Assembly (NCBI GenBank): GCA_010909165.1
Contig: MU008158.1
Coordinates: forward strand, 831,478 to 895,477
Origin: Anthoceros angustus
Lineage: Eukaryota; Plantae; Anthocerotophyta
Length of the DNA stretch: 64,000 nt
Direction: 5' to 3'
Position 1 is the stretch's first letter. The number at the start of each line of letters is the position of its first letter. The position numbers and the translations under genes are program-made. Below the pieces are notes generated by a model. The model worked only from the letters and a program-made list of their open reading frames with translations. It was not told where the DNA came from and did no database searches. Positions 9,976 through 54,669 of this stretch are shown piece by piece.

Positions 9976-10181
9976 AAAGTAAATTAAAAAGTGGAAGGCT
10001 GAATCAGCTATCCAAACTGTGTACATATGTATATCATGTGGGATATTGGCCCACCGCACTTCCGGTGCGCCATTGTGATCGGATTATGCGAGCGAGTTGC
10101 CATTGATAATAGGTAAATGATTTTTAAATACCTCTTATAATATATACCTATTTTGAACGGAAATTGTACATATGTATCTAG

Positions 10182-10462
10182 CGCATGCGCTAATGCTCAT
10201 TGTGCTCTTAATGCGAGCACAGAAACCAAAGAACCAACTCACCATGGTGAGCATGTCACACCGCAGCGGTCATGCCATCGCTCTCATCCACTCTCCCGTT
10301 CGGCGCGACGGCATTTCGCACGCCCGTCGCCGCTTCACTAACCCTAATGTAACGTATAATATAGCTATACCATATGTACTCTGTATTGTACCCATATGTC
10401 TACGTATTCCTGAACCCGTCTTTAGTTTGAAGAAGTGCAAACTCTGAAAGTGCCCTATCCCA
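10182..10462 (+). repeat. MULE left TIR
   Basis: Reverse complement of 13943-14214, roughly 90% identical by eye, one ~10-bp indel. Confidence 0.92.
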
Positions 10463-10531
10463 CGCGTTCGCGAGGCCAGGCTCCAAAGCTGGTCGTGATA
10501 GAGCAACAGAGAAGACAATCCCATAGATTTT

Positions 10532-12926
10532 ATGGATGAATCAATTCCGAGAAGGCCTGTGGGTGCCCCCATCCTGCCTCAGCCTTGCCCTTTTGAAGTG
10601 CAGAATCCGGGTCCCGGTCCTTTCTGTAAGGAGACATTGAATTGGCAGGATGGTGAGCATCTTGTCCGGCTGACGGTGACTCGTGTGAAACGTTGCTACA
10701 TTCCACGACGAGGTACCCGATTTCATTCTTTGGCGAAGAAGTTGACGTTCTTCCCCACCAAATTGATAAGGGCCAATGTTTGGACCAGATCTGGTGTGAG
10801 GCAAAGAGGAATTTCATCTACCACTCCTCGGCACTACATCAAGTTTGCTTGTGCTTATGGCTACCGAAAGCAAACTCCTCTGGATTTTGCAGTTTGTGCG
10901 GACATCACTAACAAGCCGAAGTTAGGCAAAGGGAGCAGGCGCTCCAAGATTGCTTGTGGAGAAAGCAAGAAACGTGGGTGCCAGTTTTTGTTGTTTGTAA
11001 CACAACTGGATATGTTTCCTGAGGTTGCTGAACTGAGACTACATCAAAGGGAGCACATTGATTCAACGGGAGAGTATTGTCATGGTTTGCTAGCGATTGA
11101 TTCAACTTCAAATTATACCCTTGCTCCTTACCTGTCCACAGCTAAGAAGGAGTGGGTGAAGTATAAAATGCTACATAAGACGACTGCTTTTCATATCCTA
11201 ATTGACCATGAGTCTGAGGTGTTTTTAAGGAAGCATCGTGATGTGCATGCAGTCCTTGAGCGAGATGATTTTTGGTTGCTTAGAGACATAAGGAATTTGC
11301 AGGCAGAGTTGGACTCCAGGGTGTGGCGATTCCATGTAAACGATGAGGTGAGTGTCAAGCTGTGGATGGATGTCCATAGGGAGGAGGTGTTTTTCCTTTG
11401 GAGAAGAACAAAGATGCCAAGGATTTTATGTTAGGCATCCAAAGCAGTTTTTATTCTGATCCATGTTGCGTTGGGGTCACAAGTCAGTGATATCTATGGA
11501 TGCCACATTTGGCACCAATGAATGGAAGTTCCAGATATTCACTCTGTTGGTTTTTTACGATCATTTTAACGGTATCCTCGCTTGGGTGATTACCAAGGCT
11601 GTATTTCCGCGATGGAATGCTTACGAGCAAGGATCTTTGCTACATAGGCATTGACCGCTTTTCGGTGAGCGATTGTATGGTGGAAATTAATGGCATCAAG
11701 GCTGTGTTTGGAAGTAACGTACTGGTTTTCTTGTGTCTATGGCATGTTCGGAGGGCTTGGCTGCGGTAATTGCTAAAAAAGGTGAAGGCACCCGACACCA
11801 GGCATGCAATTATGAAATCCTTACGTGATCATGCATATCGACATTGATGTCGGGGTAGAGGTAAACCAAGCATGCGTCCAAAGACTTGAACTGTTTTATG
11901 CTACCTTCCAGGAGTCTACTAGCACCTTTGTGAAGTATTTTAAAGACCAAAGGGGTTCTAACATGCTACAGTGGATTAAAGCAGTTAGGACAATTCCACA
12001 TGGACAAGGACAAGCACTCGTCCATAGAAGCATATCACAAACATAAATCGGATGTTTGCTCTCAAAACCCTTAATCGGCGATTGGATTGGCTGCTGCATA
12101 TTTTGTTCAAGAGGTTATGAGCACTTTTGGTATGTAGCCAGTGTAAGGCAGTTGGCATGCTTCGAAATTCCAAGCAATAGGACATTGTGCGGAGTGCTCT
12201 CCAAAAAGCAACAGCCATATTAGATAGCCATGTGGTCTTACCAACTCCAGACTCTCCAAATATTGCTTATGTCAACAGTCAGGACAATGGGAAAGCACAT
12301 AGATATATTGTGAGTGGTGCTGGAACCCCTTGGGGTTATTGTACATGTAAGCAAGGGACGCAAGGTTTCATGTGCAAACACCAGCTCAAGGTTATGCTGC
12401 TCATGGACAACATAGTCCCCACTCAAAAGCTGGTTGTTAGATATTCGAGGTTGCGCTTGCTCAAAAGCGAGTTCCAACACGACTTTACGCCCGATCTTGA
12501 AGGACACTTCCATGTGGGAGAATTTCCTCCCACATGGTAACAGGGACAAGTAGCCAAGGTGAGGCTGGCATTCCTGTTCTTGAGCAAGCAACCGTGTGCA
12601 CAGTAGGTAGATTGGAGACGTCTCCAAGTTTGGGAGCTTTGTGCCAGCAGTTGACACTCATTTTGGAAAAGTGGCCTTTTCTTGAGCAGCACGCGAAGGG
12701 CTTATTCCAGCAAATGATCAGACAACAAGAGGGCATGGGAGCTGGTGCAGTAGGTAACACCATGCTTCCAACACTACGAGTGCTAGCTGATAATAGCAAT
12801 TCAGATAACAACTTGAAAAGGAAGCCTTCTTTTTGGGAAAGAAGTAGTACTTGGAAGCTGCCATCTAAGAAGAAACAACCCACTTTCGTGGAGCTTGCTG
12901 GACGAGTGGACACCATTGTTCCGTAA
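10532..12926 (+). pseudogene. MULE (MudrA-like) transposase with stops and frameshifts
   Basis: SKKRGCQF..HQREH zinc-finger region, ISMDATFGTNEWKFQIFTLLV (DDE core), FLCLWHVRRAW (CxxH), CTCKQGTQGFMCKHQ (SWIM). Confidence 0.9.
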
Positions 12927-13154
12927 TATGTGGTACGGAATGCAAGCCTATTTGTGATACATGGACATATAAGACATCAATTGAGAACCAACTGTACTTG
13001 GCACTTTGTAATTTACATTGGACAGCTCATGTCTTTGACCGCTTACAAAAGCTTGAACACTATAATTGCTGCAAGAGAAATTACGAGACATATCACAGCA
13101 AGACTCTTTGCTGGAAGTGAAACCAACACAATAGTTACAACCATAGACAGAGAA

Positions 13155-13302
13155 CAACAAACGACAAGAGGCACAACAATTGACAAAGGCTTGTTCACAT
13201 GTAACAACAAACGACAAGAGGCACAACAATTGACAAAGGCTTGTTCACATGTAACAACAAGCGACAAGAGGCACAACAATTGACAAAGGCTTGTTCACAT
13301 GT
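13155..13302. repeat. 50-bp tandem repeat x3 inside the MULE
   Basis: caacaa(a/g)cgacaagaggcacaacaattgacaaaggcttgttcacatgt x3. Confidence 0.92.
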
Positions 13303-13940
13303 TTGCTCACAAGGTCTTCACAGGCTCTGCACTCATTTGTGTCCGCATGAAAAGCTGAAATTGTTTGCACTAGAGGTGTTTGTGCAGCTGTGTAGAACTG
13401 TGGCAAATTATTGGCTCTGTTGTCCATCACACCAAGGTCAGGAAACAATTCCTGAACGTAGACTGCATCAGCCCTTAGAATGATGATGCTGGAAGGGTGT
13501 CGACTTGACACCTTTTTGATGGAGAAGAGGCATAGGAAACTCTTGTGCAGCAGCCGGTCCAAGACTTCTGTACCTTCTCCTCGTAATTCCTTCAAGCTAA
13601 ACCCTTCAGGCGTGAGCCTAACAAAATCTCTACCAGCAGTGAATGCCGTCGCACATGCCTCACAACTGGAATCAGCAAGGAGAAGTCGAAGACGGTATTG
13701 CATTTGCCCATTCACAACAGCCTTACATTTTTTACACTACCTTCTCGGCGAGATACCAGTGAAACATTTCACGCAACCTCTATAGACATGTGAGCCTCTA
13801 TTGTAATCGTGTACAGTGATGCGCAGAGGCACAAAGCTGAGCTGGGTAGGCTCGTCCTCCTCCAACTGAGCGACCACCGTGTTCAAGTCGAGCTTCATTC
13901 TGCAAGTTCGGTCACGCAGTCGGTCACGGAGCAGCCTCAT
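13245..13940 (-). pseudogene. RPA70 C-terminal-like OB-fold / C4 zinc-ribbon protein carried by the MULE (one in-frame TAG at 13737-13739)
   Basis: Single frame reads VYRGCVKC..R*CKKC..QYRLRLLLADSSCEACATAF, matching the RPA1 DBD-C pattern Y-x-x-C..C..CxxC..Y..L..D....T.F. Confidence 0.72.
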
Positions 13941-13942
13941 GT

Positions 13943-14214
13943 TGGGATAGGGCAATTTCAGAGTTTGCACTTCTTCAAGGTTCAGAAATACGTAGACATA
14001 TGGGTACAATACAGAGTACATACAGTATAACTATATCATACGTTATATTAGGGTTAGTGAAGCGGCGACGGGCGCGCGAAATACCATCGCGCCGAACAGG
14101 AGAGTGGATGAGAGCGATGGCATGACCGCTGCGATGTGACATGCTCACCATGGTGAGTTGGCGCTTTGGTTTCCGTGCTCGGATTAAGAGCACATTGACC
14201 ATTTAGCGCCTGGG
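13943..14214 (-). repeat. MULE right TIR
   Basis: Inverted copy of the left TIR. Confidence 0.92.
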
Positions 14215-14505
14215 TGTATCTAGGTATTTGGTTCTTGACGCTCTATTTTGATAAACAATAGCTTAGTCGACTTTTCTTATTGTGTGCGTGTACATCAATG
14301 GCCGCTAGCCAGGAATGGTTCTACAATCTCGGGACAAAGGAAGCAACCGCTGAAACGGTCGAAAAAGGATTTTCAGATTGTTTTGCAACTATACATGACT
14401 TTACCATCACCAACGTACGGTGGCAGTGAAGACATCCGGTGCTACGTCAATCGACGACCAATAACCTTTCAGTTCAACGCTGCTAACAATCCCAGGCTAA
14501 GCTGC

Positions 14506-17500
14506 TTATTGAGCGATACAGTCGACTTTTGCTTCAATTTCTTCAGCAACCATAGCTTCTCGTGTCCTTCTTCTGCGGTGCTTAACTTCGAGATGAATGA
14601 GCAATGCTGCCACATCTGCCGGATTCACCCCACCAACCCGCGAGGCTTGTCCTATGGTTTGAGGCCGAATCTGCGAAAAAGGACAACCGTCACAAGAAAA
14701 CCAGACATAGTAGTGCCTAAGGTCTAACGGCAACACTGCGGTGTTCGGGGGATGGAACCGAACCTTAGAGAGTTTTTCCCTTGCTTCCATGGATAGTGTT
14801 TGTATTGCTAGGTAGTCCAGCTCCTGTGGTATTGGCTTATTGTGCTTATGCTCCATCTGCAATTGTCCCAAACCCACTCAGAGGAACAGCAGATGACCGA
14901 GCTGGGAACAACCACTCCAAACATACCCGCTTACATTCACATACAATCACAAGGGTGAAACTTGATCAACTATTACAGACAGCAGTAGCACCTGTTCAAG
15001 TTGGAACTGTTGACGTGTTATAAAGCCTTCATACTTGATCTCAATTTCCACACGTTCCTTCTCAGCAGTTGAGAGATCAGAACTTCCAAGACCATTTTGG
15101 TCAAGAATGTCATAGTGAATATGAGGCCTCTTCAAAATCGCTGATAACGGTACTAAGTCCTTCAAACTCTGTCCAGAAATTTGAGCTACTACTTCAGCAG
15201 CGGAGTGTGCATCTAGGATGAACAGGACCTGTTAGAAGAAAGAAACACAGACAGCTCTACTTTCCACCGAATTGAAGTCAAAGACTAGTACTACCAGATA
15301 TCCTTGTCGATTGCAGACGTTGCTTCTCTGATTCCATTCGACATTGTCTGTTCTGGAAGAGCTCCCACATCCGGTTGTCAATAAGACCAAGCTCTCTACC
15401 CAGAGGTGTCAGTCTGGTATCTGCGTTGTCCGATCGAAGCAGCAGGCGATGCTCTGAGCGGCTGAACAGAATGCAAAAACAATTAGAACTCCAGATATTC
15501 TAGATCAGCATGACTTCTATCTCTAGACCACTACACTATCCACCAGGATGCGGATGCCATCCAACATGACTTAAGCCACCACAACAGGGCACCTGGTCAG
15601 CATTCGATAAGGCTCACGCAGGTCCTTTGTCACAAGGTCATCAATCAGGGTGCCAATGAAGCTATTTTCTCTCCCCAAAGTGACAAGAGGTTTGCCACCA
15701 GCAAATTGAAAAGCATTTATGCCTGCCAGTAGTCCCTGCAACATCAAAGAGCCATCCAGTTCACAGGGACATAGAGCACAACACTGTCTCAGTCTCCTCT
15801 ATATGATCCTAACACATCTGATCCTGACAAGTTGCAAAGCAGATATACCTGGGCAGCAGCTTCTTCGTAGCCCGTGGTGCCATTGATTTGACCACTGAAG
15901 AATAGTCCTTCAAGCTTTTTGGTCATGAGGGTGTTGTAGCATTGATGGGCAGGCAAATAGTCATACTCCACAGCATAAGCGGGCCTCAGCATTGAGCACT
16001 GTTCCAATCCAGGTAGGGTTCTCAACAATGCAAGCTGTAAATTCTCCGGTAATCCAGTTGAGAAGCCCTGATTGATGTCCATATACTCAGCGTCACAGCA
16101 GAACAGGTTTTGCCCTAACATCCTGACCCAAGTAGAAAATCACAAATGTGTTTGTGCATTACCTGCACATACAGTTCTGGAACAGTGCGTCCTTCAGGCT
16201 CTAAAAAGATTTGATGGGACTCCTTGTCCTTGAACCTAACGATCTAGAGAAAGAACGCTCAATGAGCTCACTCGCTGGTGGTATTTGCACTAATCACTCT
16301 CTGTGCGAGAAAGCTCTTCTCCTATTGCATTTCCAAAAAAACTCACCTTGTCTTCAATTGAAGGGCAGTACCTTGGTCCCTTTGCATCAACCCAACCACC
16401 ATAAGTGGGAGTTTCATGCAAATTTTCAATTATTAATTGATGAGTAGCCGCAGTTGTTCGTGTCAGATAACAGGACATCTGCTCCCTTTCTATATGCACT
16501 TCGGGATCCACACTGAACCATCGGACCTGAATGCACCCGTCAACAGCCTTATCAAAGATTGCTAAGAAAATCTGCACACTACATACAGGAACCTTCTTAT
16601 GGCGACCACGATAGAAACACTTTGCACATCTGCCACCACCAACAAAACTGACATCAACCACACACCTCTTCGTCACCAGGTTGTGGCTCCAACTTGCTAT
16701 AATCCACTGAACGAACATCCACTCGTGCCGGTGTGCCAGTCTTCAGTCTGTCTGTCTCAAACCCAAGCATGTGCAGGTTCTCTGTCAACCCTGTCGAAGC
16801 TGACTCTCCTGCCCGTCCCGCTGCCATGCTGGATCGGCCAACCCAAATCTTTCCATTCATGAAGGTTCCAGTCGTTAGAACGACTGCTGGTGCATAAAAA
16901 TTCATCCCAAACAGAGTTCGAACACCCTCCACGTTGTCGTTCTTCCCAACAATGATATCCGTCACCATGGCTTCTCTAATAAACAGATTCTCAGTGCTGC
17001 AGAACACAAGCCAGGCAGATCAGCGCATGTATTGGAATCCAGAATAAATTGTTTGCTAGGAAGAGGCGAGGGCATCATGAAGAACACCAGCATGTGACTT
17101 CAAGCACCATCGTAAAACTATCAGTAAACAAGACAGATTTCTTACTTCTCTACAACCTTTTTCATTTCGATTGCGTATTCTCGTTTATCTGTCTGTGCTC
17201 GTAATGCCCAGACTGCAGGGCCCCTAGAACGGTTCAACACTCTCTTCTGCAAATAGCATCTGCATAGTGACAAGTTTTCTCATTACTGCTCGCAAAAACA
17301 CGTTCCTGTGTCGAAAGTACTCTGGCAGCAGTAGATGTACCAAATACATGACAGGTTCGAAATTCCGAACCTGTCTGCCATCCTTCCAATCTCCCCTCCC
17401 AACGCATCCACCTCATGAACCAACTGCGATTTTGCTGGGCCCCCGACAGCGGGATTGCATGGCTGTAACCACGGTAACACTGTAGCTTAGAAACCTGTCG

Positions 17501-18261
17501 AGCAAACGTCACACCTGTGATATCTAGTCCATTCACCCAAACCATTGCTGCGACCAGTTCACATTCAATCACAGACATTACATGCTTCAAATCATAACCA
17601 CAACTAACCTGCCAAGCAATTCGATCAAGGTTCAGAGTAAGGAGCAGGGTTCTGGCACCCATACGTGCAGCTGCTAGAGCAGCTTCACACCCAGCGTGTC
17701 CTCCCCCAACCACCAAAACATCATATCTTTCTTCCATTCCACCTGAACGATCAAAAACACATTCACGTCACTTCCATCGCCGTCGGGCTTTTCTACTCCC
17801 ATTCTATAGCGGTCAGCAAACATACACCTACAGTTTCCTGGCTTAAAAGATTGTGAGCTCGAGGTGAAAGCTCTGGTTGTAGCTCGCAGAGGTCGATCTG
17901 CCGGCACTGCTCCACACCATTTCCCATTCCAATGTACAAAAGGTAGCCTGCTGGCCCCCGAGAGGGCCCTCCTACTCTGGCATGAACAGCACTGCTCCAA
18001 CCTTTGCCTCAACCGAGACATGCGCCAGCCTGGGGACAGACTCGGTGACGCCAGAGGTGCTCGGAATACAAATCCTGAAGGGCCGCAAGATAAATGTCGG
18101 CGAAATCCAGGAGCGGACAGGCACGTTCCAAATGGGCCGTCCACCATGACCCAAGAGGCTGCGAATGAAGCACGGGACTGCAGGAGATAGCATCGTGCAG
18201 CTGTTCGGTGCAGAGGAGCTGCGGAGTGCTGCAGGGCAACTCCTCCGCAGGTGCCTGCCAT
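14506..18261 (-). CDS. mnmG: tRNA U34 5-carboxymethylaminomethyl modification enzyme MnmG/GidA, organellar, multi-exon
   Basis: Exons [93 protein letters not shown]. Ser/Arg-rich transit-like first exon; GT-AG introns ~100 bp. Confidence 0.96.
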
Positions 18262-20319: not shown

Positions 20320-20527
20320 GGCTTAGGCCAAATGGACACACATTTATAAGAACGCCGTAATTAAGCATCCTGAGCTTAGATCGGTACTTAGATGGGGTGC
20401 CTAAAGGGAGTGGATGCCCTTGGTGCAAGTAGCTTAGGCACACCATGGTACAAGTTGTTAAGTACCAAGTCCCATGACGGAAATCCGTGCTTAGTGGACT
20501 TAAATAAAATTCTTCTTCTTGTTCTTC
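20320..20527 (+). mobile_element. Short interspersed repeat with AATAAA + (TTC)n tail (SINE or LINE 3' end), copy 1
   Basis: Nearly identical to the reverse complement of 61478-61650; partial copy at 51781-51904. Confidence 0.65.
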
Positions 20528-28631: not shown

Positions 28632-29335
28632 GCGCCTCTTTTTGTACAATGCAGGTGCTTTCTTTTCGCAATGCAGGTTTGTTCTTACTCCAGAACCTAC
28701 TTGCGCCTTCTTCTTACTCCAGAACCTACATGTCCGTGCTTTTTGTAATGCAGGTTTGTTCTTACTCCAGAACCTACATGTCCGTGCTTTTTGTAATGCA
28801 GGTTTGTTCTTACTCCAGAACCTACTTGCACCTTCTTTCCGCAATGCAGGTTTGTTCTTACTCCCGGAACCTATTGTCACTTTCTTTCCGCCATGCAGGT
28901 TTGTTCTTACTCCCGGAACCTATTGTCACTTTCTTTCCGCCATGCAGGTTTGTTCTTACCCCCAGAACCTACTATCGTTTTCTTTCCGCAATGCAAGTTT
29001 GTTCTTACTCCAAAACCTACCTGCGCCTTCTTTTCCGCAATGAGGTTTGTTCTTACTCCAGAACCCACTCGCGCCTTCTTTTCCGCTATGCAGGTTTGTT
29101 CTTACCCCCAGAACCTACTATCGTTTTCTTTCCGCAATGCAAGTTTGTTCTTACTCCAAAACCTACCTGCGCCTTCTTTTCCGCAATGAGGTTTGTTCTT
29201 ACTCCAGAACCCACTCGCGCCTTCTTTTCCGCTATGCAGGTTTGTTCTTACTCCAGAACCCACCTCGCCTTCTTTTCGCAATGCAGGTTTGTTCTTGCTC
29301 CCGGAACCTACTGTCACCTTCTTTCCGCAATGCAC
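28610..29335. repeat. ~48-49-bp minisatellite, ~14 units, with a 146-bp higher-order repeat
   Basis: Core atgcaggtttgttcttactccagaacctac; 28942-29087 is repeated at 29088-29233. Confidence 0.93.
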
Positions 29336-33904: not shown

Positions 33905-36900
33905 TTACTGGCTATCTCCGCAAGAACAGAAGCCATCCTTAAACCGATGCACGCAATGGGCGTCTCTAATAATAATCTCTCGCTGTTCTACTCTGGAGAT
34001 GAGCTTGGTGCCGGTGTGGCAATGGCCACACATCCTGAGATTCTTGGTGACCACCAGAGTGGTGCCCGGAGGGGTGTTGAGGAGGCCGAAAGCTAGAGCC
34101 AGCTTCTCGGCATGTTTGCACAGGGAGTCTTCACTTTCCTGGTGAGGCCCGGGGCCGAGCACCGGGTTCGAGTCCCTGTATGCCTCGGTTTGTGTGTTGA
34201 GGCTGTTGAGCTTGGCCGAGGTGTCGTCCCTGCTTCTGCCCACTATGAATTCGTGTACCTGGCTGCCCACCTCGATCAAGGCCCTGGCGGGCTTCTTCTG
34301 GGCACCTGCGGACTGCATCATGGTTTCGACCTGGTCGACATCCGCCCACCTGCCGGCTTCTGCGTAGATGTCGGACATGAGGGCGTAGGCGGAGGCATGT
34401 TGGGGTGCCAAGTTAACTAGGCGGTGGAAGCAGCTCCTTGCTAGCTCGAGATGGTTGTGGGTCTTGGAGGCAGTGAGGAGAGATGTCCAGCCGATGGTGT
34501 CATGCTGTAGTGGCATTGTGTGGAGCATGGTTGCTGCTTCCTCCAGCCGGCCGGACCGACCCAGGAGGTCTACCAGGGAGTTGTAATGCTCGACCTGGGG
34601 CTGGATGCTGTACTGTCGGGACATCATGGTGAAGTAGTTCTGGCCCTCGGTCACCAGACCCGCATGGCTGCATGCCGCCAGCAGACATGTGAAGGTTGCA
34701 GCATCAGGTTGGACTCCTTGTTGTTGCATCCTGGCGAAGCACTGCATAGCCATGGTGCAGTTGTTGTGCTGGCCGTAGCCGCCAATGAGGGCGTTCCATG
34801 TCACCAGATCCTTCCTTGCTTGACTGTCGAATACACCCTGGGCGTCCTCCAGGCATCCGCATTTTGCATACATGTCCACCAGACTGCTGCCCACAAACGC
34901 GTCATTTTCAAGTCCTTTGTCCAGAATGTCAGCATGTATCTGTTGTCCTTCTTGAATGGCTCCCAGTTTGCCACAGACCTTTAGTACACACGAATATGTG
35001 ACGATGTCAGGCGTCAAGCTTTCTTGCTGCATTCTGAAATATGCCTTGAGGGCATCGTGGCCGAGCCCATGCTCCGCGTATCCGGCGATGAGGGTGTTCC
35101 AGGTTACTACATCTTTTGTTTGCAACCTGTCGAACAACAGACATGCATCTCCCATGCTTCCGCATTTGATGAACATGTCTATCAAGGCGTTCCCAACACA
35201 CACATCTGCTTCAAGTCCTCTTGCCAGAACCTCAGCATAGACCTTCCTGCCCTCCTCTAAGTTTCCTAAGCTACCACATGCTTTCAAAATGCTTACATAG
35301 GTGAAATTGTCTGGGACCGTGGCACTCAGAAACATGCTCCTGAAAAGTTCAAGTGCCTCTTGCCCCAGCTCATGCTGAGCGCACCCTGCAATCATGACAT
35401 TCCATGTGACCAAGTCCCTGGCCAGCAATCTGTCGAATACTCTGCGAGCATCCTCCAAGCTCCCGCATTTGGCGTACATATCCACCAACATGCTCCCAAC
35501 CAACACGTCCTCCTCAGCTCCTCTTTCCAGGATTTGGACATGAATCTGCCTGCCTTCGTGTATGTTTCCAATGATAGCACACGCTCTGAGGAGGCCCGCA
35601 TATGTGGCCTTGTTAGGCACAATTCCATCCCCTAGCATTCTCATGTACAGCTTGAGGGCTTCATCCGCAGGCCCCTGATGGGCATATCCTGCAATCATGG
35701 CAGTCCATGAAACCACATCTTTTGAAGGCAATTTGTCAAACACCAGTTGGGCATCTTCCATGCTTCCGCATTTTATGTACATATCTAATAGACTGTTTCC
35801 GAGTGAGCTATCAGCTTGAAGTCCCCTTTCAAGGATATGGGCGTGAATCTGCTTGCCTTTCTCCAAGTCCCCTACACTGCCGCATGCTTTCACAACAGCG
35901 ACAAGGGTTACATGATTGCCTGCCAACTTCCCATCCTGCTGCAGCAGGGTGTAAAGTTGAAGCGCTTCTTGCCCTCGTCCATGCTGAGCATATCCTGAAA
36001 TCATAGCACTCCAAGTCACCACATTCTTTTTTGGTAATCTTTCAAAAACTCTGCGGGCCTCCTCCAGACTACCACATTTGGCATACATGTCGACCAAGGT
36101 GCTTCCAATATAGATATCAGCTTCCAGTCCCCTTTTCAGGACCTCAGCGTGAATCTCCTTGCCCTCTTGTATAGCCCCTACATTGCCACATGCTTTGAGA
36201 ATGCTAACGAATGTGAAGTGGTTTGCTGCACACTTGCCATCCTGCCGCATCTTTACATAAAGATTGAGCGCTTCCTGACCACACCCATTTTGAGCATAAC
36301 CTGCAAACATAGCATTCCATGTCACAACATCTGTGCTCGGCAAACTGTTAAAGACATCCCTGGCCGTCTCCAGGCTCCCACATTTGGCATACATGTCTAC
36401 CAGGGCGCTCCCGACAAACACATTTGTGTCAAATCCATACTCCACCACATCCGCATGAACCAACTTGCCTGAGGCTAAATCTCCTGCACTGGCACATGAT
36501 TTCAGGACAGCAGCCAGCACAAAATCAGTCGGTCTGACGCTTGACTGTCGCATTCGCACATACAATTTGATAGCCTGCTCAGCCTTTCCATGGTCACAAT
36601 GTGCTGAAATGATCGAAGCCCATACAAAGGTGTCGGGTACAGCCAACTTGTTAAAAACCTGCTCTGCTTCCATCAAACTCCCCGTGGCAGCGTACATCCG
36701 AATTAAGTGGTTCCCCATAAAAGAGTCCAACGCAGACCCGACTTGCGCAGAGAGAGCATGGACACGCCTGCCCACCTCAAGGTCTCTAGTTGCAGTGCAC
36801 CCTTTCAGGAGCATGTACAACATGCCACTGGGGATGGAAAATCCTCTCCGGTGCATCAGGTTCACAGCCTCCAGCGCACTTTCTAGCGCTCCCTCCTTTC

Positions 36901-36940
36901 TGAAGTCTGTAGGCTCCAATAGATCTTCAACAGCCACCAT
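33905..36940 (-). CDS. PLS-class PPR protein with E1/E2 and DYW:KP-type deaminase-like domain (candidate U-to-C organellar RNA editing factor)
   Basis: About 8 P-L-S triplets; KKPARALIEV, HAEKLALAFGLLNTP, KNLRMCGHCH, end FCSCGDSQ. First in-frame ATG at 36940; an upstream targeting exon (~37025-37375) is probable. Confidence 0.93.
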   Translation of the reverse strand: MVAVEDLLEPTDFRKEGALESALEAVNLMHRRGFSIPSGMLYMLLKGCTATRDLEVGRRVHALSAQVGSALDSFMGNHLIRMYAATGSLMEAEQVFNKLAVPDTFVWASIISAHCDHGKAEQAIKLYVRMRQSSVRPTDFVLAAVLKSCASAGDLASGKLVHADVVEYGFDTNVFVGSALVDMYAKCGSLETARDVFNSLPSTDVVTWNAMFAGYAQNGCGQEALNLYVKMRQDGKCAANHFTFVSILKACGNVGAIQEGKEIHAEVLKRGLEADIYIGSTLVDMYAKCGSLEEARRVFERLPKKNVVTWSAMISGYAQHGRGQEALQLYTLLQQDGKLAGNHVTLVAVVKACGSVGDLEKGKQIHAHILERGLQADSSLGNSLLDMYIKCGSMEDAQLVFDKLPSKDVVSWTAMIAGYAHQGPADEALKLYMRMLGDGIVPNKATYAGLLRACAIIGNIHEGRQIHVQILERGAEEDVLVGSMLVDMYAKCGSLEDARRVFDRLLARDLVTWNVMIAGCAQHELGQEALELFRSMFLSATVPDNFTYVSILKACGSLGNLEEGRKVYAEVLARGLEADVCVGNALIDMFIKCGSMGDACLLFDRLQTKDVVTWNTLIAGYAEHGLGHDALKAYFRMQQESLTPDIVTYSCVLKVCGKLGAIQEGQQIHADILDKGLENDAFVGSSLVDMYAKCGCLEDAQGVFDSQARKDLVTWNALIGGYGQHNNCTMAMQCFARMQQQGVQPDAATFTCLLAACSHAGLVTEGQNYFTMMSRQYSIQPQVEHYNSLVDLLGRSGRLEEAATMLHTMPLQHDTIGWTSLLTASKTHNHLELARSCFHRLVNLAPQHASAYALMSDIYAEAGRWADVDQVETMMQSAGAQKKPARALIEVGSQVHEFIVGRSRDDTSAKLNSLNTQTEAYRDSNPVLGPGPHQESEDSLCKHAEKLALAFGLLNTPPGTTLVVTKNLRMCGHCHTGTKLISRVEQREIIIRDAHCVHRFKDGFCSCGDSQ

Positions 36941-38149
36941 CCTGCAAGATCGATCAATACTGTATCTTATAAACACAGCTCCTGATCCCAAATAGCTTTC
37001 AACATTCCACTACACGCCAAATACCTGACAGCGTTCCCTTGGTCACATCCATAATCAACAGCTGCTTCAGCAACTAATCCGTTCCTTGAAGGAACAGCAG
37101 AAGCTCCCCCTGAGCTTGAATTTCTCCCAAAGCTCGATCGAGACCCAAGCCAGAAACCCCCCCTTGTCGTGCTGTGCATGAAGGCCGGATACATGCAGTT
37201 TCTCTGTGGTGATCACCGATAGTCAACTGGAAACTGTGGGCAAAGCAACGCTGCCCAGGTCTCAATGACCATCTCGAGCCTTGCACAGCCCAAACAGATG
37301 GCAGTCACATTGGAATCACAGCAGATTTTACCTTCAAGAACCCCCAGTTCCACGACTGAGAACGAGCGGCCATAATCGTTCCCCCCATCGCATCCCGGCC
37401 AATTTCATCACCTGCAAACCAGCTAAAACATCAACACCCACCCACTCACCTGCTGCCAATCCAATCCAATCCGCTTAAGCCATCACAGGTACCCTGCGCA
37501 TGACAACAGCTCACCATTTCCACTTGTGTGGCGCTCAGCTGAGCCCCGTAGGATCGACAAGCGCCTATACCATTCTTTCAATGGTACAAGAGGGCTGAAT
37601 CTGCTCTGATTCAGCCATGCCAGCACCATTCTTCCCCCAGAACGACCACTTCTCTTCATCGCCCAGCGGGGTGTAAGAAGTGCAGAGGTACGCCTGGCAG
37701 GCTACTGGGAAGCTGGTCCTAGCAGCCTGAAGTAGGCAGAACAGTTGTCGTTTGTATTTCTTCGTGTGGAAGAAGTCGTCCAGATACGACATATCTTATT
37801 CTCAGGTTGGATACATATATCTTTTTCGCTAAAGCTTGTTGGGTAGTGGCAAGTGATAGAACTGCAGCAATGGGTCAGTGAGCAAGACGAATTCTTGGTA
37901 GATCTTAGGGTTGTCTAGGGATAGGTGTATGAAACGGGAAGGCGAAGGCTTGCGAGTCGACTCTGAATGAGGACAGGGTAGGTTGGATGGACGACAGGGG
38001 AATTGAATCTAAGCGTAGAACAGGGAAGGGCTCGTGCAAGGCATGGGGGCGTTGGAGAGAATGAGAATGTAAGCTCTGGTGACCAATCTTGGATCTGGGG
38101 ATGTGAATTTGGCAGCTGTGTCCGTTGCTGCTGCAGGGGCCGTGGCGGA

Positions 38150-41100
38150 ATGGCGGTCTCAAACGGCGAGACGGGTGAAGGTGTAGAGGAACGCATCAGG
38201 AGCATTCTGCGGGATCTGCATCTTCCGGAGACCAGGGCAGCTCATGTGGCAGTGGATGGAGAGATCGCGGAGAGTCTGAAGTTCGATCAGGCATTCTTCA
38301 AAGCATTTGCAGGTGCCTTAGTTCTGGCGGCTGAGAAAGCCTACCGCACAGGGGCAGGATCTGCGTGTTACAAGCTGTTAAGATGGTCATGTATTCTGAT
38401 CAGAGAGAACGCCGATATTGTGTCTTCAAAATCTGCGTTCTCCAGGTTAGTTTCTGTACAGGGGTCTTTACTCCATGCACTTGCAGGAGCTTCTCCTCGA
38501 CTGCAGAATGCCAGCACTCGCACTATATTGCAGTTGTTCTCCCAGAAACCCAATCTTGCCGAGCGTTATGTGGCTGAGCTGCAGGGGAATGCTGCCGATC
38601 CTGGCAGCAGCACTGGACTCGCTAGAGTTCTCATTCAGCTTGCAACAAGGGATGCAGAGTTTCTTGCGAAGCATAGGGCAACTTTCCTTGGACTGTACAT
38701 CACTCTGGTATGGTCGTCGAAGGAGAGGCCGTCCAGGAGGTTGATCGAAGCATTCCGGCCTCTTCTGAGCATCTTAAATCATAGTGAATTTGGAAACGTG
38801 GTGCAGCCTGCAGTTGTCAAAATGCTTCGCAGGAACCCTGAAACGGTGATGGACGCTGCCTGTACTCTCTTCAGCTCAGTAAGTTTGGACATGAGTAACT
38901 ATGCTGTGGATGTCTACACAGCTGTTCTTCCACAGGCTCGGCATAGTGATGAAGCCAGGCGGAAAGATAGTGCTACTGTGGTAGGCAACTTGGCTCTGCA
39001 GACGAGTGACCAAAAGGTTGTACTGACCTTGTATCAGACTGCCAAGTCAGTGCTGAGCGGTTCGGAAGGGAAGCTAACATTTCCGTACCAGAGGGTGGGT
39101 ATGATTGGAGCAATTTTGGCGCTATCAAGGACTGAAGGGGGCGAGCAAGTTTCTTCTCTTGCTGCTACAATTGGTAGAGATCTGATGCTACTGTATAAGG
39201 ATGAAGGAAATGAAGAAGTCAGGCTCGGGATATTGTCCTCCTTGGGTGTGTGGCTTCCTCGAGCCAAGAATGGTTTGCCTCAAGATTCTGTCAAGTTCTT
39301 CACCGCTGGTCTGAAGGAGAAGGACAACTTGAGGAGGGGGCATCTTCGTTGTTTAAGGCTTGTTTGTAGCGATCCTTACTTTGCCACTCAATTACAGATG
39401 CTGATTGATCCTATGTTGCAGCTGGTGAAAAGCGGCATAGCAAAGCCTGCTCAAAGGGTGGATGGTATTTATGCCTTTCTTTTATCAGTCTTGATTGCAA
39501 CAGTGGACAGCAAAGCCAACGATCTACTTAGCAAGGAGAAACTTTGGCCTATGGTCTTTCAAAAGGACTCTGCACTGTTCTCAACATCATTTGTTCCTAA
39601 GATGGCTGTTGAAGATTGCATCGCTCTTTTGCAACTTGTAGAGGTTTCTGTTTTGCAGTTTCCTCACCGTGTGACAGACAACTCCTCTGCAGCTTCAGAT
39701 GTGTTCAAGCTGGTTGTCACCCTTCTTTGGCATCCTGATTTCAGTGTTCGAGAAAGGGCGTCTCAGGTTGTGTCTCAGTTGCATAAAAACAATCTTCAGT
39801 GGTCAAGGATGCTTCTCGACTCCTTCTGTGAAGCTGTTGTTGCGGTAGAGGAGCGACTGTCCTCTCAGAAGCTTGGTGACATTGCAGAAACTGCTACCGA
39901 GTCAACTGCATTGGCACCGTTTGAGACCCTGCTTGGGAAGGCTCTGGTTGCAGTTGCCTCCCCAAATTTTGAGGGGAATTCGGACGCATGTGTACAAATT
40001 CTTCTGGTTTCTCACAATCCTTGTGTTGTGAGAGGTCGCAGAAAGGACGTTGTGTGGAAAGTCCTTGTGAGGTCATGGCGGAAGCGTGGGGCGAACCTTG
40101 TCTCAGCTTTGGAAGCAGGTCCTGTACTTTTGTGTAAGTACCTGTTTGGGCGTAGTGGGTTAAGCAGCAGTCGACCATCGGAAGCGCAGGCAGCTGTGTC
40201 AGCCCTGGCAACTGCGATGCAGACCTTGCCTCAACTTCTGTTCTCTCATTTCTTTCTTGAAATTCAACTGCTAGGGCGTCAGGCATTTGATTCTCTAACT
40301 GAGAAGGATACAAAGGATGAATCCTCTGTGATTGAAGGTTCAATGGCTATACCTGTTCAACAGGCAAAAAGACAAGTTGGAGGTCCTGGAAAGAAGGACT
40401 CCAAAAGGCCAGGAAAGGGACCCAGTGATGCTGAGAAGGCAAAGTCATCTAAGGAGCTGGCAAGAGAATTGCAGCTGAAGGAAGAAGCTGCAGCACAGCT
40501 GAAGGTACGGGCGGTAAAGGAAAGGGTCTCTTGGCTTTTGGAAGCATTGGGTGCTGTGGCTGCAGCCAATCCCACCTTTGTGCATAATCAGCTTCCTGTG
40601 CTGATTGAGTACGTTGTACCTCTATTGAGTTCTCCAATAGTGGGAAGCAAGGCCTTTGAGGTTATGGTGAAGCTGGCAGGATGTGTGCCGCCTTCATTGA
40701 GGCATTTTGCTCCAGATATTGCTGTGGCGCTGTCACTTGTGGCAGGTTCGCCTTCCACAATCTCAGATGAATTCTCAGTTTCCTTGGAACAGCAGGAGAT
40801 AAAACCGGGATTGGTTAGAAGACTGCTTCTGGGAATGGCAAATGCTTGCAAGGATGGGCCACTGCCAGCTCCAACGTTTTCTCTGTTCTTTCCCATTATA
40901 GAGAAGGTGCTTTCTATGCCCACCAAAAGTAGTGTGCATGACCAGCTTTTGTACATCTTCAACTTACATTCTTTCACTGATATGTCACTGCCCCATCTGA
41001 AGATGATTTTGGTGCTGTATAAAGTGTTGGAATGTGTACCTTCATATCAACAGCAGATTGTAGGCTTGTTGAACAAGCTTTGTACTGGACTTGACAGCTC

Positions 41101-44100
41101 AGACCTGGCAGAGGCTCTGTCAGGGCTGTTCTCTGAACATGTTCCTGTGCGTGCCGCGTGCTTGAATGCTGTCAAGTATGTGCCTTGCCTTGCCAGGAGG
41201 GAAACTCCTCCCGATAGTACTGTGGCTGCCCGCATTTGGATGGCCATGTATGATCCAGACTGGAAGTGTGCTGAGCTAGCAGAGGAGATCTGGGACCTGT
41301 ACTCTCATGAACTTGGAAGAGACTATGCCTTGCCTCTTCTCAAGTCGCTTGGCCATCCAAACCTGAATGTGCGGCTTGCAGTTGCTGGAGGTCTGGCTGC
41401 AGCTATGGACGAATATACAACAACTGTGCCTGAAACGCTGTCCTCCCTGTTCTCATTGTATGTAAGGGATCTTCCTATTGGGTCTGGGAAGGAGGATCCC
41501 ACCTGGCATTCAAGAGATGGAGTGGCTTTGGGGCTGCATGCTGCAGCAGACATCCTTACTGATCGTGACCTTCCTGTTGTTGCCACGTTCCTGATCTCGA
41601 GGGCACTTGCGGATAGAAACCCAGAGGTGCGCATAAGGATGCTGAATGCTGGGGTTGCAATCGTAGACAAGCATGGGAAGGAGAATGTTGGTCTGCTCTT
41701 CCCAATTTTTGAGAACTATCTTGACACCAAGGCTGCCGACGAAGATCAGCATGATCTGGTGCGTGAAGCAGTTGTGATTTTCATGGGTGCCCTTGCAAGC
41801 CACCTTTTACTGGATGACTCCAAAGTTTCAGCGTTTTTGGATAAGTTGTTGGAGGTTCTGAATACTCCCTCTGAGGCAGTTCAACGAGCAGTTGCCAAGT
41901 GTCTTCCTCCTTTGGTCCCATCGCAACAAGACAAGGCACACATTCTTGTGACAAAGCTTCTGAGTCAATTGCTCCAGAGTGATAAGTACGCTGAACGTCG
42001 AGGGGCAGCATTTGGCTTAGCAGGAGTGGTCCAAGGTCTTGGGTTGTCAAGCCTTAAAAAGTATGGCATCATGGATGCCCTGAAAGTTGGAGCCCAAGAC
42101 AAGAATGCCCATGCCCGTGAGGGAGCCTTGCTTGGTTTAGAGTGTCTCTGTGAATTTCTTGGCCGGTTGTTTGAACCATACTTGATTCACATTCTGCCCC
42201 TTCTTCTGGTGTGCTTTTCCGATCAGGTCTTGGCTGTTCGAAGTGCTGCAAACGCTGTAGCTCGTGCTATGATGGCTCAGTTGACTGGTCAAGGGGTGAA
42301 ATTGGTCCTTCCAGGTTTGCTCAAAGGTCTGGAGGATAAAGCTTGGCGTACAAAGGAAGGGAGCGTACAGTTGTTAGGAGCCATGGCATTCTGCGCTCCA
42401 CATCAGTTGTCACATTGCCTTCCGACAATTGTTCCAAAGCTCAGTGAAGTCTTGACGGATACACATCCCAAGGTGCAGTCAGCTGCACAAACTGCTCTGC
42501 AGCAAGTTGGCAGTGTGATAAAGAACCCTGAAATTGCCGCTCTTGTACCCACACTTTTGACAGGAATTGCAGATCCGAATGAGCACACCAGGTCTTCCCT
42601 TGATGTGGTTTTACAGACCACATTTGTCAACTCGGTGGATGCTGCATCTTTGGCTCTGCTTGTCCCCGTTGTCCACAGAGGATTGAGAGAGAGAGGTTCT
42701 GACACAAAGAGAGGGCTGCACAGATAGTCGGCAACATGAGTAGTTTGGTGACGGATCATGAGGATATGCTTCCTTACCTTAGCCTGTTGATACCTGAAGT
42801 GAAGAAGGTTCTGGTTGACCCAATCCCAGAAGTCCGGACTGTTGCAGCTCAAGCCCTTGGTGCATTGATCAAGGGAATGGGGAAGAGAACTTCAAGGACC
42901 TGGTACCCTGGTTGCTGGAATCTCTTAAGTCGGAGACAAGCGGTGTGGAAAGATCAGGTGCGGCCCAAGGTCTCAGTGAAGTTCTGGAAGCACTTGGCAC
43001 AAAGTATTTTGAATCACTATTACCCGACATCCTGCACAACTGTTCTCATCAGCGTGCTGCTGTCCGAGACGGACACCTCACTCTGTTTAAGTACCTTCCA
43101 AGTGCTTTGGGTTCTAACTTTCAAAAGTATCTAGCAGAGGTGTTGCCTGCAATATTGAATGGTTTGGCTGATGAGAATGAAGCTGTAAGGATGCTGAATG
43201 CTGGGGTTGCAATCGTAGACAAGCATGGGAAGGAGAATGTTGGTCTGCTCTTCCCAATTTTTGAGAACTATCTTGACACCAAGGCTGCCGACGAAGATCA
43301 GCATGATCTGGTGCGTGAAGCAGTTGTGATTTTCATGGGTGCCCTTGCAAGCCACCTTTTACTGGATGACTCCAAAGTTTCAGCGTTTTTGGATAAGTTG
43401 TTGGAGGTTCTGAATACTCCCTCTGAGGCAGTTCAACGAGCAGTTGCCAAGTGTCTTCCTCCTTTGGTCCCATCGCAACAAGACAAGGCACACATTCTTG
43501 TGACAAAGCTTCTGAGTCAATTGCTCCAGAGTGATAAGTACGCTGAACGTCGAGGGGCAGCATTTGGCTTAGCAGGAGTGGTCCAAGGTCTTGGGTTGTC
43601 AAGCCTTAAAAGTATGGCATCATGGATGCCCTGAAAGTTGGAGCCCAAGACAAGAATGCCCATGCCCGTGAGGGAGCCTTGCTTGGTTTAGAGTGTCTCT
43701 GTGAATTTCTTGGCGGTTGTTTGAACCATACTTGATTCACATTCTGCCCTTCTTCTGGTGTGCTTTTCCGATCAGGTCTTGGCTGTTCGAGTGCTGCAAA
43801 CGCTGTAGCTCGTGCTATGATGGCTCAGTTGACTGGTCAAGGGTGAAATTGGTCCTTCCAGGTTTGCTCAAAGGTCTGGAGGATAAAGCTTGGCGTACAA
43901 AGGAAGGGCGTACAGTTGTTAGGAGCCATGGCATTCTGCGCTCCACATCAGTTGTCACATTGCCTTCCGACAATTGTTCCAAAGCTCAGTGAAGTCTTGA
44001 CGGATACACATCCCAAGGTGCAGTCAGCTGCACAAACTGCTCTGCAGCAAGTTGGCAGTGTGATAAAGAACCCTGAAATTGCCGCTCTTGTACCCACACT

Positions 44101-47100
44101 TTTGACAGGAATTGCAGATCCGAATGAGCACACCAGGTCTTCCCTTGATGTGGTTTTACAGACCACATTTGTCAACTCGGTGGATGCTGCATCTTTGGCT
44201 CTGCTTGTCCCCGTTGTCCACAGAGGATTGAGAGAGAGAGGTTCTGACACAAAGAAGAGGGCTGCACAGATAGTCGGCAACATGAGTAGTTTGGTGACGG
44301 ATCATGAGGATATGCTTCCTTACCTTAGCCTGTTGATACCTGAAGTGAAGAAGGTTCTGGTTGACCCAATCCCAGAAGTCCGGACTGTTGCAGCTCAAGC
44401 CCTTGGTGCATTGATCAAGGGAATGGGGGAAGAGAACTTCAAGGACCTGGTACCCTGGTTGCTGGAATCTCTTAAGTCGGAGACAAGCGGTGTGGAAAGA
44501 TCAGGTGCGGCCCAAGGTCTCAGTGAAGTTCTGGAAGCACTTGGCACAAAGTATTTTGAATCACTATTACCCGACATCCTGCACAACTGTTCTCATCAGC
44601 GTGCTGCTGTCCGAGACGGACACCTCACTCTGTTTAAGTACCTTCCAAGTGCTTTGGGTTCTAACTTTCAAAAGTATCTAGCAGAGGTGTTGCCTGCAAT
44701 ATTGAATGGTTTGGCTGATGAGAATGAAGCTGTAAGGGATGCTGCTCTGAGCGCTGGGCACATCTTTGTTGAGCACTATGCAACAACATCTTTACCTCTG
44801 TTGTTACCAGCCATAGAAGATGGGATATTCAATGAAAACTGGAGAATTCGGCAGAGCTCAGTAGAGCTACTGGGAGATCTGCTGTTCAAGGTTGCTGGAA
44901 CTTCCGGCAAAGTAGTAATAGATGGTGGAAGTGACGATGAGGGTGCAAGCACTGAAGCGCATGGGCGTGCAATCGTGGATGTTCTCGGCAAAGAACGGAG
45001 GAATGAAGTTTTGGCAGCAGTGTACATGGTCCGCTCTGATGTCAGCCTCTCTGTACGACAAGCAGCTTTGCATGTCTGGAAGACTGTGGTCTCCAACACG
45101 CCAAAGACTCTTAGAGAAATCATGCCGGTACTTATGAACACTCTGATCTCAGCGCTTGCTTCAACATCCACAGAGCATCGTCAAGTGGGTGCTCGGTCCT
45201 TAGGTGAGCTCGTCAGGAAAATGGGAGAGAGGGTCCTCCCGTCTATCATTCCCATACTTGCTCGGAGGCTTGTTGATGAAAATGCAAGCACAAGGCAGGG
45301 TGTTTGCTTTGGACTGAGTGAAGTCCTGGCTAGTGCGGGGAAGCACCAGCTTGTATCGTACATGGGAGATTTGATCCCTACCATTCAGACTGCCTTATGT
45401 GATAGCTCTCCGGAAGTTCGTGTAGCTGCAGGCATAGCTTTCAGTACTCTGTTCAAAAGTGCAGGGATGCAGGCAGTTGACGAGATTGTTGCTGCTCTCC
45501 TCCGGAACTTGGAAGACGAGGACAAGTCGGATGTGGCACTGAATGGTCTCAAGCAGATTCTTAGTGTGAGGGCAGCTGCAGTTTTGCCTCATATTCTGCC
45601 AAAGTTGGTTCAAACTCCTTTGACGCCTTTCAATGCAAATGCCCTTGGGGCGTTAGCAGAGGTCGCAGGCCCTGGACTTAACGGATACCTGTCCACCATA
45701 TTGCCTCCGCTTATATGTGCCATGGGTGATGAAGATCAAGAGATAGCCTCCCTGACAAAGAAGGCAGCTGAGACGATGGTTTTGGCTGTAGATGTTGAAG
45801 GTGTGGACTCACTTATTGGGGAGCTGAGTAAAGGCCTCGGTGACACACAGAGTGTTGTCAGGAGAGGTTCCGCGTACTTGACAGGTTTCCTGTTCAAAAA
45901 CACAAGTGTTGACCTGAAGAAGGAGGTGCCAAGTCTGTTGACGACACTTATTGTTATGCTGACAGACCCTGACAGTAACACTGTTCAGGCTGCATTGGAG
46001 GCTCTAGCAAGTGTAACGGGTTCAATTCCAAAAGAGAATCTTCAGTCACATATCAAAGTTGTGCGCGATGCACTCTCCACTGCAAGAGACAAGGAAAGGC
46101 GGAAAAGGAAAGGGGATCGGATTCTCATTCCTGGGCTGTGCTTGCCTAAATCCCTGCAGACATTGTTGCCCATATTTCTTCAGGGACTTATGGGTGGTTC
46201 TGCTGAGGTCAGGGAGCAAGCAGCGGATGGTCTTGGGGAGCTGATTGATGTCACTAACGAAGTCACTCTGAAGCCTGTCATTGTCTCCATAACCGGGCCT
46301 CTTATTCGAATTGTTGGAGATAGATTTCCATGGCAAGTGAAAAGTGCCATACTAGCAACTCTTGGGATAGTCATCACAAAGGGAGGAATTGCCTTGAAAC
46401 CATTTCTCCCTCAGCTGCAAACAACGTTTATTAAGTGTCTGCAAGACAACTCAAAACCTGTGAGGTCCAGGGCAGCATGGGCTCTTGGTCAGCTGAGTGC
46501 GCTGAGTGTTAGGGTGGATCCAATGGTTGATGATCTTCTCACTCGCCTGCAGGCGTCTGAGAATGGGTTGAATGCAGTGCTGATTGCACTTATGGGGGTG
46601 ATAAAGAATGCTGGCAAGAATGTGAGCGTAAACGTGATCTCCAATGCTGTGGTAGCTTTGCAAGGTCTTCTCAATGCAGAAGAAGGTGACATCAGAGCGC
46701 TGGCAGCAAGGACGTTTGGAATAGTATCAAAGTATGTTGATGATGGAAACTTCAATAGGGTACTACAGAGTCTGGTGGCATCCCCATCTCAGCCATGGCT
46801 CTTGCGACATGGTGCAACTATTGCATTGGCATCCGTGCTAAGGCACTCCTCGTCTCGGATCTGCGTGTCCAGTGCTCAGCTGTCAGTTGCAACCTCAGTC
46901 ATCTGGGCAAGAGCCAGGGATGACAAGTCTCCTGTGCGCGAATATGCTGCCAGGGCCATTGGGTTTTTGCTGAGCTTTCAGCTGAAAGAGAGCACATCTG
47001 GTTCTGACTCCCTGCCTGACCTGGTACCCACGCTGGTGGACCTTTTGAACGATGACACTAGCGAGGTGCGGAGAAGGGCCCTCAGTAGCCTCAAGTTGAT

Positions 47101-47368
47101 CTCCAAGGCAAATGCAGGTGCACTGTTGGGTTATATTAAGCTGCTGGGTCCAGCCATCGGGAACTGCCTAAAGGACAGCAGCCCGCCAGTCCGTTTGACT
47201 GCAGAGCGTGCTGCCTTCCACCTCTTCCAGTTGCCTAGAGGACCAGAGAATCTCCAACTGGCTCAGAAGTACATTACAGGGCTGGATGCAAGGCGAATCG
47301 CCAAGCAAGCAGAGTTCAGCGATGCCAGCGACGACAGTGAGGGAGACTCATCTCCCTCTGGAGCCTAG
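38150..47368 (+). CDS. GCN1: GCN1/ILITYHIA HEAT-repeat activator of GCN2; single exon, ~2557 aa after collapsing the internal duplication
   Basis: ERRGAAFGLAGVV, KAWRTKEGSVQLLGAMAFCAP, DTHPKVQ, NWRIRQSSVELLGDLL, GSDDEGASTEAHG, ITGPLIRIVGDRFPWQVK, KPFLPQLQTTF. The 1574-aa and 1150-aa ORFs overlap in content. Confidence 0.95.
41634..44732 (+). repeat. Tandem duplication of a 1554-bp GCN1 segment (41634-43185 and 43186-44732)
   Basis: By eye the copies differ only by eight small deletions totalling 9 bp. TAAGG(G)ATGCTG microhomology at the junction. Confidence 0.95.
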
Positions 47369-53544: not shown

Positions 53545-54669
53545 ACCATTCGCATCATCCGCATTCAGCCCAGCTGCCCTGTCGTGCACCCTAAAACAGA
53601 AGCAGAGAACCACTGGTGCGCTGAACCTACCTTCTTCAAATTGAGAATTGCCATGGCGCCTCCACTGCGCGGATTGAATTGCCACGGACGCCATCGATTT
53701 GCTGCAGCCTGGATTAGCTGCGTAAGAGAGATACGCAAGCCACGACACGAGAACCCGAGACGGGGTGCTCTAAACCCTGCACCCTTGTGGTGAAGAAAAC
53801 CACAAGAACTGTATTAGCCAATAGTTGTTGACTTCTTTTCTTCTTATGAATAAATAAATAAATAAATAAATTTTAAAACGTTTGACAAAATATTTAATAG
53901 AGACTAATTAAATTGATTATAAGAAATAATTTAATGAAAGGGGAACTGCAGGGTGCCCTAAGAGGAGAAAATAGCAGCAAAAGAGAAGGTTCCATGGAAG
54001 GTAGAAGGGGGTGTACCATAATTGTGAATGACAGCCTATTGGTTTCTCCCCGTGGACTATTGCTATGATCTTTCTTTGGCCACAGCAATAGTGAAATCTT
54101 GTGTCCGTGGCTCGGAAGGTGTTCATACGAAATAGATCATGCAGCCATTGTCCAATTGGTCTTGCCCAGTTGCCATATCCTCTTGTCCTCGTCCATAAAA
54201 TGATAGAAAAACAACAAAAAAACCTTCTTTCCATGTTCACATTCGAGAATGCCATGTTGTGAGTTGTGAAGGATGTTATCCAACAAGAATGATCCTCCCT
54301 CTCATACCGTAAAATAACAACCAATAGATGCTCTTATGGAGCCAATAAAGGAAACAATTACTAGGGATCCCATACTTTAAAATAGCCTATGCTATAGCTA
54401 GCCCGTACTAAAATTAAATACCAGGTTTTAATCTAGCAAAAAAGGGTTTCTCCATCACGCTAACCGTTTAGGCCAAAGAGATATTCCAAGGACTTCTACA
54501 TAAATTTTAGCGTTGTTTAGGGAGGCCGCCGGACTCAAAGATTTGCTGCATGAGGAGTAATCTAACTTGATATCATGAGGGGCCCTTTTGTCTTTGCGAA
54601 TAGTGGGCTTGAGGAACAAATTTCTATTGGAGTAAGAGATTTTAGATAAACAAAACTTTATGAATTTAG

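Follow-up and report, generated by a model that had tools for sequence, protein, structure and literature searches.

A dead Mutator-family element from the hornwort Anthoceros angustus whose convergent second gene probably encodes an RPA70C/DDIAS-type OB fold

The maize element MuDR (mudrA/mudrB) has a 9-bp target site duplication (TSD), long terminal inverted repeats (TIRs), a DDE transposase with a SWIM finger, and a second gene that runs convergently from the other TIR (PMC10401008, PMC6446971). What the second gene of Mutator elements does is a long-open question: its product in maize, MURB, is required for insertion (PMC10401008) and binds the transposase MURA (PMC12973397), and it has no recognisable domain (PMC10401008, PMC12973397). 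Other Mutator-like elements (MULEs) carry antisense accessory genes such as PMD, SET, OTU, MutB, and VANB/VANC (Table 1 of PMC6446971), and active plant TIR elements carry Zf-GRF and Peptidase_C48 proteins as well as NAM-associated ones (PMC12973397). RPA70-like genes are borne by Helitrons (PMC7385966), which are rolling transposons with neither TIRs nor TSDs. Here we describe a MULE in a stretch of 64,000 nucleotides from the hornwort Anthoceros angustus (assembly GCA_010909165.1, contig MU008158.1, positions 831,478 to 895,477 of the forward strand). We will call this stretch the window, and all coordinates are given within it. The element (10182-14214) belongs to a cut-and-paste Mutator family with a convergent pair of genes, and the copy here is dead. 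One gene is the transposase, and we will call the other, on the minus strand, ORF2. Like the accessory genes of other MULEs and TIR elements, which are often antisense, ORF2 is a dedicated second open reading frame, and like the RPA70-like genes of Helitrons, it would be an RPA homologue carried by a transposon.

The element has a TSD within the 8-11 bp range of the Mutator superfamily, long TIRs, and a transposase with a DDE triad, a CxxH motif, and a SWIM finger. As in maize MuDR, its two convergent genes begin near the TIRs. A previous reading of the sequence alone had described a MULE with a 9-bp TSD, long TIRs, and a MuDR-like convergent layout, and all of this held up. The TSD (TGTATCTAG) is exact, with a chance expectation of about 4^-9 per offset, and the TIRs, which are about 280 bp long, differ at 20 of 271 aligned columns (13 of the 20 mismatches are transitions). 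Given a comparison of the two arms, and contig joints that link 10492/10493 to 13914/13916, the left TIR probably has a degenerate extension to about 10498. The right junction of the element is present without differences in the public run X1 (14152-14400), so the element is not an artefact of assembly. The same run has loose ends at 10183 and 14195, where the ends of the element are joined to other flanks, which shows that the organism of X1 has further insertions of the family. Some 280 bp separate the element from the last exon of a host gene, mnmG/gidA (~14506-18000, minus strand), with the element on the downstream side.

The transposase gene begins at an ATG (10532) that is 70 bp from the left TIR, where the sequence-only reading had placed it. 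Transposase ORFs from MULEs of mosses (see below) align with it from the N-terminal region through the SWIM finger, with 25-30% identity at the N terminus and about 60% at the DDE motif. This alignment locates the key features: the two D residues of the triad at 11499 and 11671, its E at 12027, the CxxH motif at 11734-11745, and the SWIM finger at 12340-12381. Pieces of the transposase have weak Pfam scores for MULE, ZSWIM RNaseH, and SWIM. We take the N terminus to be a WRKY/GCM1-like zinc region. Unlike maize MuDR, the transposase has no match to the N-terminal Pfam family of the angiosperm MuDR clade, and among the sequences compared it is nearest to the moss MULEs. A word search with its N terminus found nothing; full-length kin fall outside the length window of that search. 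Frameshifts and stops split the gene into several frames, so this copy is dead: it lacks the intact transposase ORF of an autonomous element. At several of the frame changes, contigs of related copies have compensating indels. The family to which it belongs was once autonomous.

When read from the ATG at 13940, ORF2 contains a single in-frame TAG (13737-13739), as the sequence-only reading had noted when it joined two half-genes into one frame. (In our local computations with ORF2, this codon was written as X.) We considered an intron that would remove the TAG. A donor-like site, AG/GTAGTG, is present, but splicing there would delete the second CxxC, so we rejected it. The same reading took 13940, which does lie 3 bp inside the right TIR, as the start codon. 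This ATG is probably decayed TIR sequence instead: the region corresponds to the sequence inward of the TIR on the other arm (left CGCGAGGC versus right CATGAGGC, with two CpG transitions). Also, contigs from run X1 and from two runs of one sample of another organism, which we will call organism B, connect TIR sequence to 13914-13916; in X1, this follows the left arm up to 10492-10493. These joints leave 13898 as the first ATG that is shared, and it is the likely start of the shared protein. The argument that a start codon of its own at the TIR sets ORF2 apart from a Pack-MULE capture is lost along with the ATG at 13940.

The other end of ORF2 is disrupted by three tandem units of 50 bp. Two extra units shift the reading frame, which leads to an early stop at 13245-13247. 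In both runs from organism B, a contig omits 100 nt, with the joint at 13161-13262; the 42-letter short side of this joint is compatible with a start at 13120, which lies in unique sequence. The one-unit form in organism B implies that the original end of ORF2 was the stop at 13043-13045. With one unit, ORF2 is in frame from 13898 to that stop and encodes 251 residues. The contigs from organism B span 12831-13149 without gaps. The sequence-only reading had the two genes converging on the 50-bp block, but the block lies inside ORF2.

The restored C terminus, of 52 residues, is strikingly hydrophobic. Its mean Kyte-Doolittle hydropathy is 2.04 (P = 0.0002 by shuffling), with peaks of 2.78 and 2.93 in 19-residue windows on either side of a short PAK loop. 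The hydropathy of the part of the tail that lies outside the repeat was unmatched in 20,000 shuffles. Of the 25,322 stop-free stretches of 52 codons in the window, only the tail reaches a mean of 2.0. Judging from this composition, a transmembrane hairpin very probably formed the end of the original ORF2 protein.

The N-terminal ~150 residues of ORF2 are, in our judgement, probably a strongly diverged OB fold of the RPA70C/DDIAS type, with a C4 zinc ribbon. This assignment relies on the spacing of motifs, on one restored tryptophan, and on a lead from a protein language model. C56, C59, C69, and C72 of ORF2, followed by YRLRLLLADS, provide the C4 zinc finger that PF08646 (RPA1 DBD-C) has between strands beta1 and beta2, with the identity of these two strands in ORF2 being presumed. 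The pattern Y-x2-CxxC-x9-CxxC-x9-YRLxLxLxDxS-x5-TxF, which we take to be a signature of DBD-C, occurs once in 734 kb, at ORF2, although the pattern was written after ORF2 had been seen. The bases are stacked in DBD-C by W537 and F541 (PMC8329085). ORF2 has F100, and position 96 is Cys in this copy; all contigs from organism B that cover 13653 differ there and encode Trp, giving W-x-T-x-F. The W-x3-F spacing in organism B corresponds to that of W537/F541, a comparison made by spacing alone. In the ESM Atlas, the top three matches were all Rep_fac-A_C clusters (score 0.87, with 170 of 256 features shared, and 10 of 10 family matches in one clan). A trimmed model of ORF2 has the predicted order strand-strand-helices-strand-strand. 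The short CxxC of ORF2 is presumably like that of DDIAS. The OB fold of DDIAS is OB4-like and stand-alone, and it binds single-stranded DNA (ssDNA) via its zinc cysteines (10.1101/2025.09.09.675193). In contrast to RPA1 and DDIAS, ORF2 has no OB-A or OB-B domains and no clear trimerisation helix, its OB-like region is followed by the putative membrane hairpin, and the similarity is below significance for profiles.

Several results weigh against this reading of ORF2. The Atlas score of 0.87 is below 0.9 and has low recognition value, and a search of the ESM Atlas with the N-terminal piece found nothing. Neither piece of ORF2 matched Pfam (including Rep_fac-A_C, the family that the sequence-only reading had named), NCBIfam, or the sequences in PDB. 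These profile and sequence searches were made piece by piece, and the TAG splits the domain within the zinc ribbon, which lowers their sensitivity. Word searches with the pieces were blank as well, as were searches of metagenome, genome, and viral contigs. For the C-terminal piece, there was no relative at E <= 0.001 among 1.84 billion representative proteins; the sole match (P0001, a repeat protein rich in cysteine from an unrelated contig) was rejected as spurious. Single-sequence models of ORF2 (pLDDT 39 and 64), built without strand beta1 or an alignment, did not match any OB fold (best Z 4.7). Also, the element was found in no RNA run, and both the membrane location of the protein and every step of the mechanism proposed below are inferred. 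The RPA70-C-like identity in the sequence-only reading is thus plausible, on the strength of the motif spacing, the restored tryptophan, and the Atlas lead, but no match to a profile or structure was significant.

At least two organisms have ORF2 as an inherited part of the element. Joints between the TIR and ORF2 are present in all three runs (X1 and the two from organism B), and there are ORF2 contigs from both organisms. There are 67 differences in the contig from organism B that covers 13330-13893, along with a length difference of 6 nt. A transposase contig has diverged similarly in the comparison with organism B (65 differences in 573 nt). The sequence-only reading had favored a dedicated gene over random Pack-MULE capture, and had counted an ORF2 that was near-identical to an exon of host RPA1 and confined to this copy as evidence against its view. 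ORF2 is instead borne by the family, as it stands beside the TIR in contigs from two organisms, and its C-terminal piece has no significant relative among the 1.84 billion representatives.

A scan of metagenomes for the DDE motif yielded 80 loci (L002-L081). The metagenomes that contain them are, we believe, samples of peat moss. The ORFs at these loci score above the Pfam cut-off for MULE. The moss family resembles the hornwort element in the architecture and motifs of its transposase, in having a convergent second gene, and in having tandem repeats 3' of the transposase. In contrast to the hornwort element, its members are about 10-11 kb long, with introns in the transposase, and continue for about 7.5 kb beyond the DDE motif. 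We found no homolog of ORF2 in L002-L081. By a majority reading of the family, the second gene is a different one that combines a C2H2-like finger with helical exons and belongs to no clear Pfam family. (We considered a membrane anchor for the moss gene as well: there is a hydrophobic ORF after its last exon, but the required splice donor is not conserved, and we did not adopt this reading.) As judged from these sequences, the two-gene layout is common to the hornwort element and the moss family and the second gene is not. That another gene occupies this position in the moss relatives suggests an old convergent slot in bryophyte MULEs, with an occupant that can be exchanged. Separately, a contig from a bacterial bin contains a MULE-like transposase fragment with a eukaryote-like retroelement ORF (L082:6001-7567), which is probably eukaryotic contamination of a bacterial assembly.

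Table 1. Features of the element and of the related moss family. Coordinates are within the window unless a locus is named.
Feature	Position	Strand	Basis
Left TSD, TGTATCTAG	10173-10181	.	Identical to 14215-14223
Left TIR	10182-10462	+	TIR alignment
Mutator transposase pseudogene, apparently intronless	10532-12926	+	Pfam, moss MULE alignment
Gap of 116 bp that separates the original stops of the two genes	12927-13042	.	Stop positions of both genes
Original C terminus of ORF2 (52 codons) with a pair of transmembrane-like helices; not in frame in this copy	13043-13201	-	Hydropathy
Three tandem 50-bp units within ORF2	13153-13302	.	Repeat comparison; one-unit form in organism B
ORF2 body: putative RPA70C/DDIAS-type OB fold and C4 zinc ribbon, then linker and further CxxC	13303-13898	-	Motif scan, Atlas, organism B contigs
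Degenerate TIR extension containing ATG 13940	13899-13942	-	Arm comparison, contig joints
Right TIR	13943-14214	-	TIR alignment
Right TSD	14215-14223	.	Copy of 10173-10181; junction present in run X1
Second gene of the moss family, examples	L067:7246-7719; L018:7872-8330	-	Majority reading of family

Compared to maize MuDR, the element stands out for a second gene that resembles an OB fold and zinc ribbon with a membrane hairpin. It is also distinct from Helitrons: instead of a RepHel gene, TC/CTRR ends, and no TSD, it has the TIRs, TSD, and DDE transposase of a TIR transposon, and its protein would consist of one C-type OB domain and a hydrophobic tail. Zf-GRF domains bind ssDNA, which is a precedent for an accessory protein with this role. 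Neither RPA nor an OB fold is among the accessory genes in the main texts of PMC6446971 and PMC12973397 (Table S6 of the latter, with 335 singleton domains, is outside this scope), and a targeted literature search found no published RPA-like or OB second gene in a MULE. What is new here is the putative membrane hairpin, the restored tryptophan, and a slot for the second gene whose occupant appears to be exchangeable.

Could ORF2 be passive cargo, that is, a piece of a host gene that an ancestor captured in the manner of a Pack-MULE and that has been carried along without a function? MULEs often capture host sequence (PMC6446971), ORF2 is broken twice in this copy, and moss relatives with the same transposase do without it. 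However, a Pack-MULE fragment is expected to be highly similar to a host gene, and the C-terminal piece has no close donor among the 1.84 billion representatives, which argues against recent capture of an exon of host RPA1. ORF2 is also a complete unit from start to stop that fills its arm from the TIR to within 116 bp of the transposase's stop, and it has been retained in two organisms with a length difference that preserves the frame. We consider passive cargo to be unlikely. Another explanation, which we view as rather unlikely, is that ORF2 is a hitch-hiker or anti-silencing gene that is common to several superfamilies of DNA transposons. Its product would act at a membrane (of the endoplasmic reticulum or at plasmodesmata) by binding single-stranded RNA or DNA, and would blunt silencing or move nucleic acid, with no help to strand transfer. 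There are precedents for both parts of this idea: Fanzor1 is shared among superfamilies of DNA transposons (PMC3627910), and VANC acts against silencing (PMC6446971).

ORF2 might instead be an orphan zinc-binding membrane protein with no OB fold, whose likeness to RPA70C is due to chance. This would account for the blank profile and structure searches. But about ten spaced positions of the signature fit, the tryptophan is restored at position 96 in organism B, the Atlas matches agree with each other, and the trimmed model has its strands and helices in the order described above. We consider an orphan of this kind to be improbable, and we prefer the reading of ORF2 as an RPA70C/DDIAS-type protein that belongs to the family.

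The rest of the window contains several other features. An intact gene for a PLS-type pentatricopeptide repeat (PPR) protein with E and DYW domains is at 33905-36991 (minus strand); its motifs look KP-type, and it is a candidate U-to-C editing factor. A GCN1-like gene with no evident introns (38003-47368) is interrupted by about 1.55 kb of sequence duplicated in tandem (41634-43196 versus 43186-44744, 99.4% identical), which is either a recent duplication or an artefact of assembly. At 52261-53748 (minus strand) is a Med4-like ORF that includes a short proline-rich repeat, and there are retroelement remnants, both on the minus strand: a copia-type pol fragment at 56687-57451 and, by eye, a protease-like fragment at 462-1121. 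As for repeats, a 48-bp tandem array occupies 28708-29334 (about 86% identity between shifted copies), and a dispersed repeat of 173 bp occurs in opposite orientations at 20352-20524 and 61479-61651 (97% identical), possibly as a small non-autonomous element.

If ORF2 does encode a membrane-anchored OB protein, how might it help the element? By analogy with MURB, both genes would be transcribed inward from the TIRs. The zinc-stabilised OB domain would bind single-stranded nucleic acid, and the hydrophobic hairpin would anchor the protein in a nuclear-facing membrane. There, alone or with the transposase, it could hold the ssDNA that arises during transposition, either at the resected donor gap or at gaps at the insertion site. 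Tethering these gapped or resected intermediates would favor reinsertion and gap repair, and hence a higher copy number. Later, frameshifts in the transposase, the TAG, and the 100-bp duplication inactivated this copy. The membrane-anchor tail makes a soluble RPA-like factor for gap repair less likely than a tethering protein. Our confidence in the tethering mechanism is evenly divided.

More broadly, we tentatively raise the possibility, which we think is doubtful but worth stating, that several superfamilies of DNA transposons in hornworts share a membrane-anchored accessory protein of the RPA70C/DDIAS type that binds ssDNA, tethers transposition intermediates, and fills the role of MURB. 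An accessory protein that combines an ssDNA-binding fold with a membrane anchor predicts simple assays, namely for binding to ssDNA, for localisation, and for binding to the transposase. If such a protein is indeed shared across superfamilies, then the unexplained function of the second gene would gain a form that can be tested biochemically.

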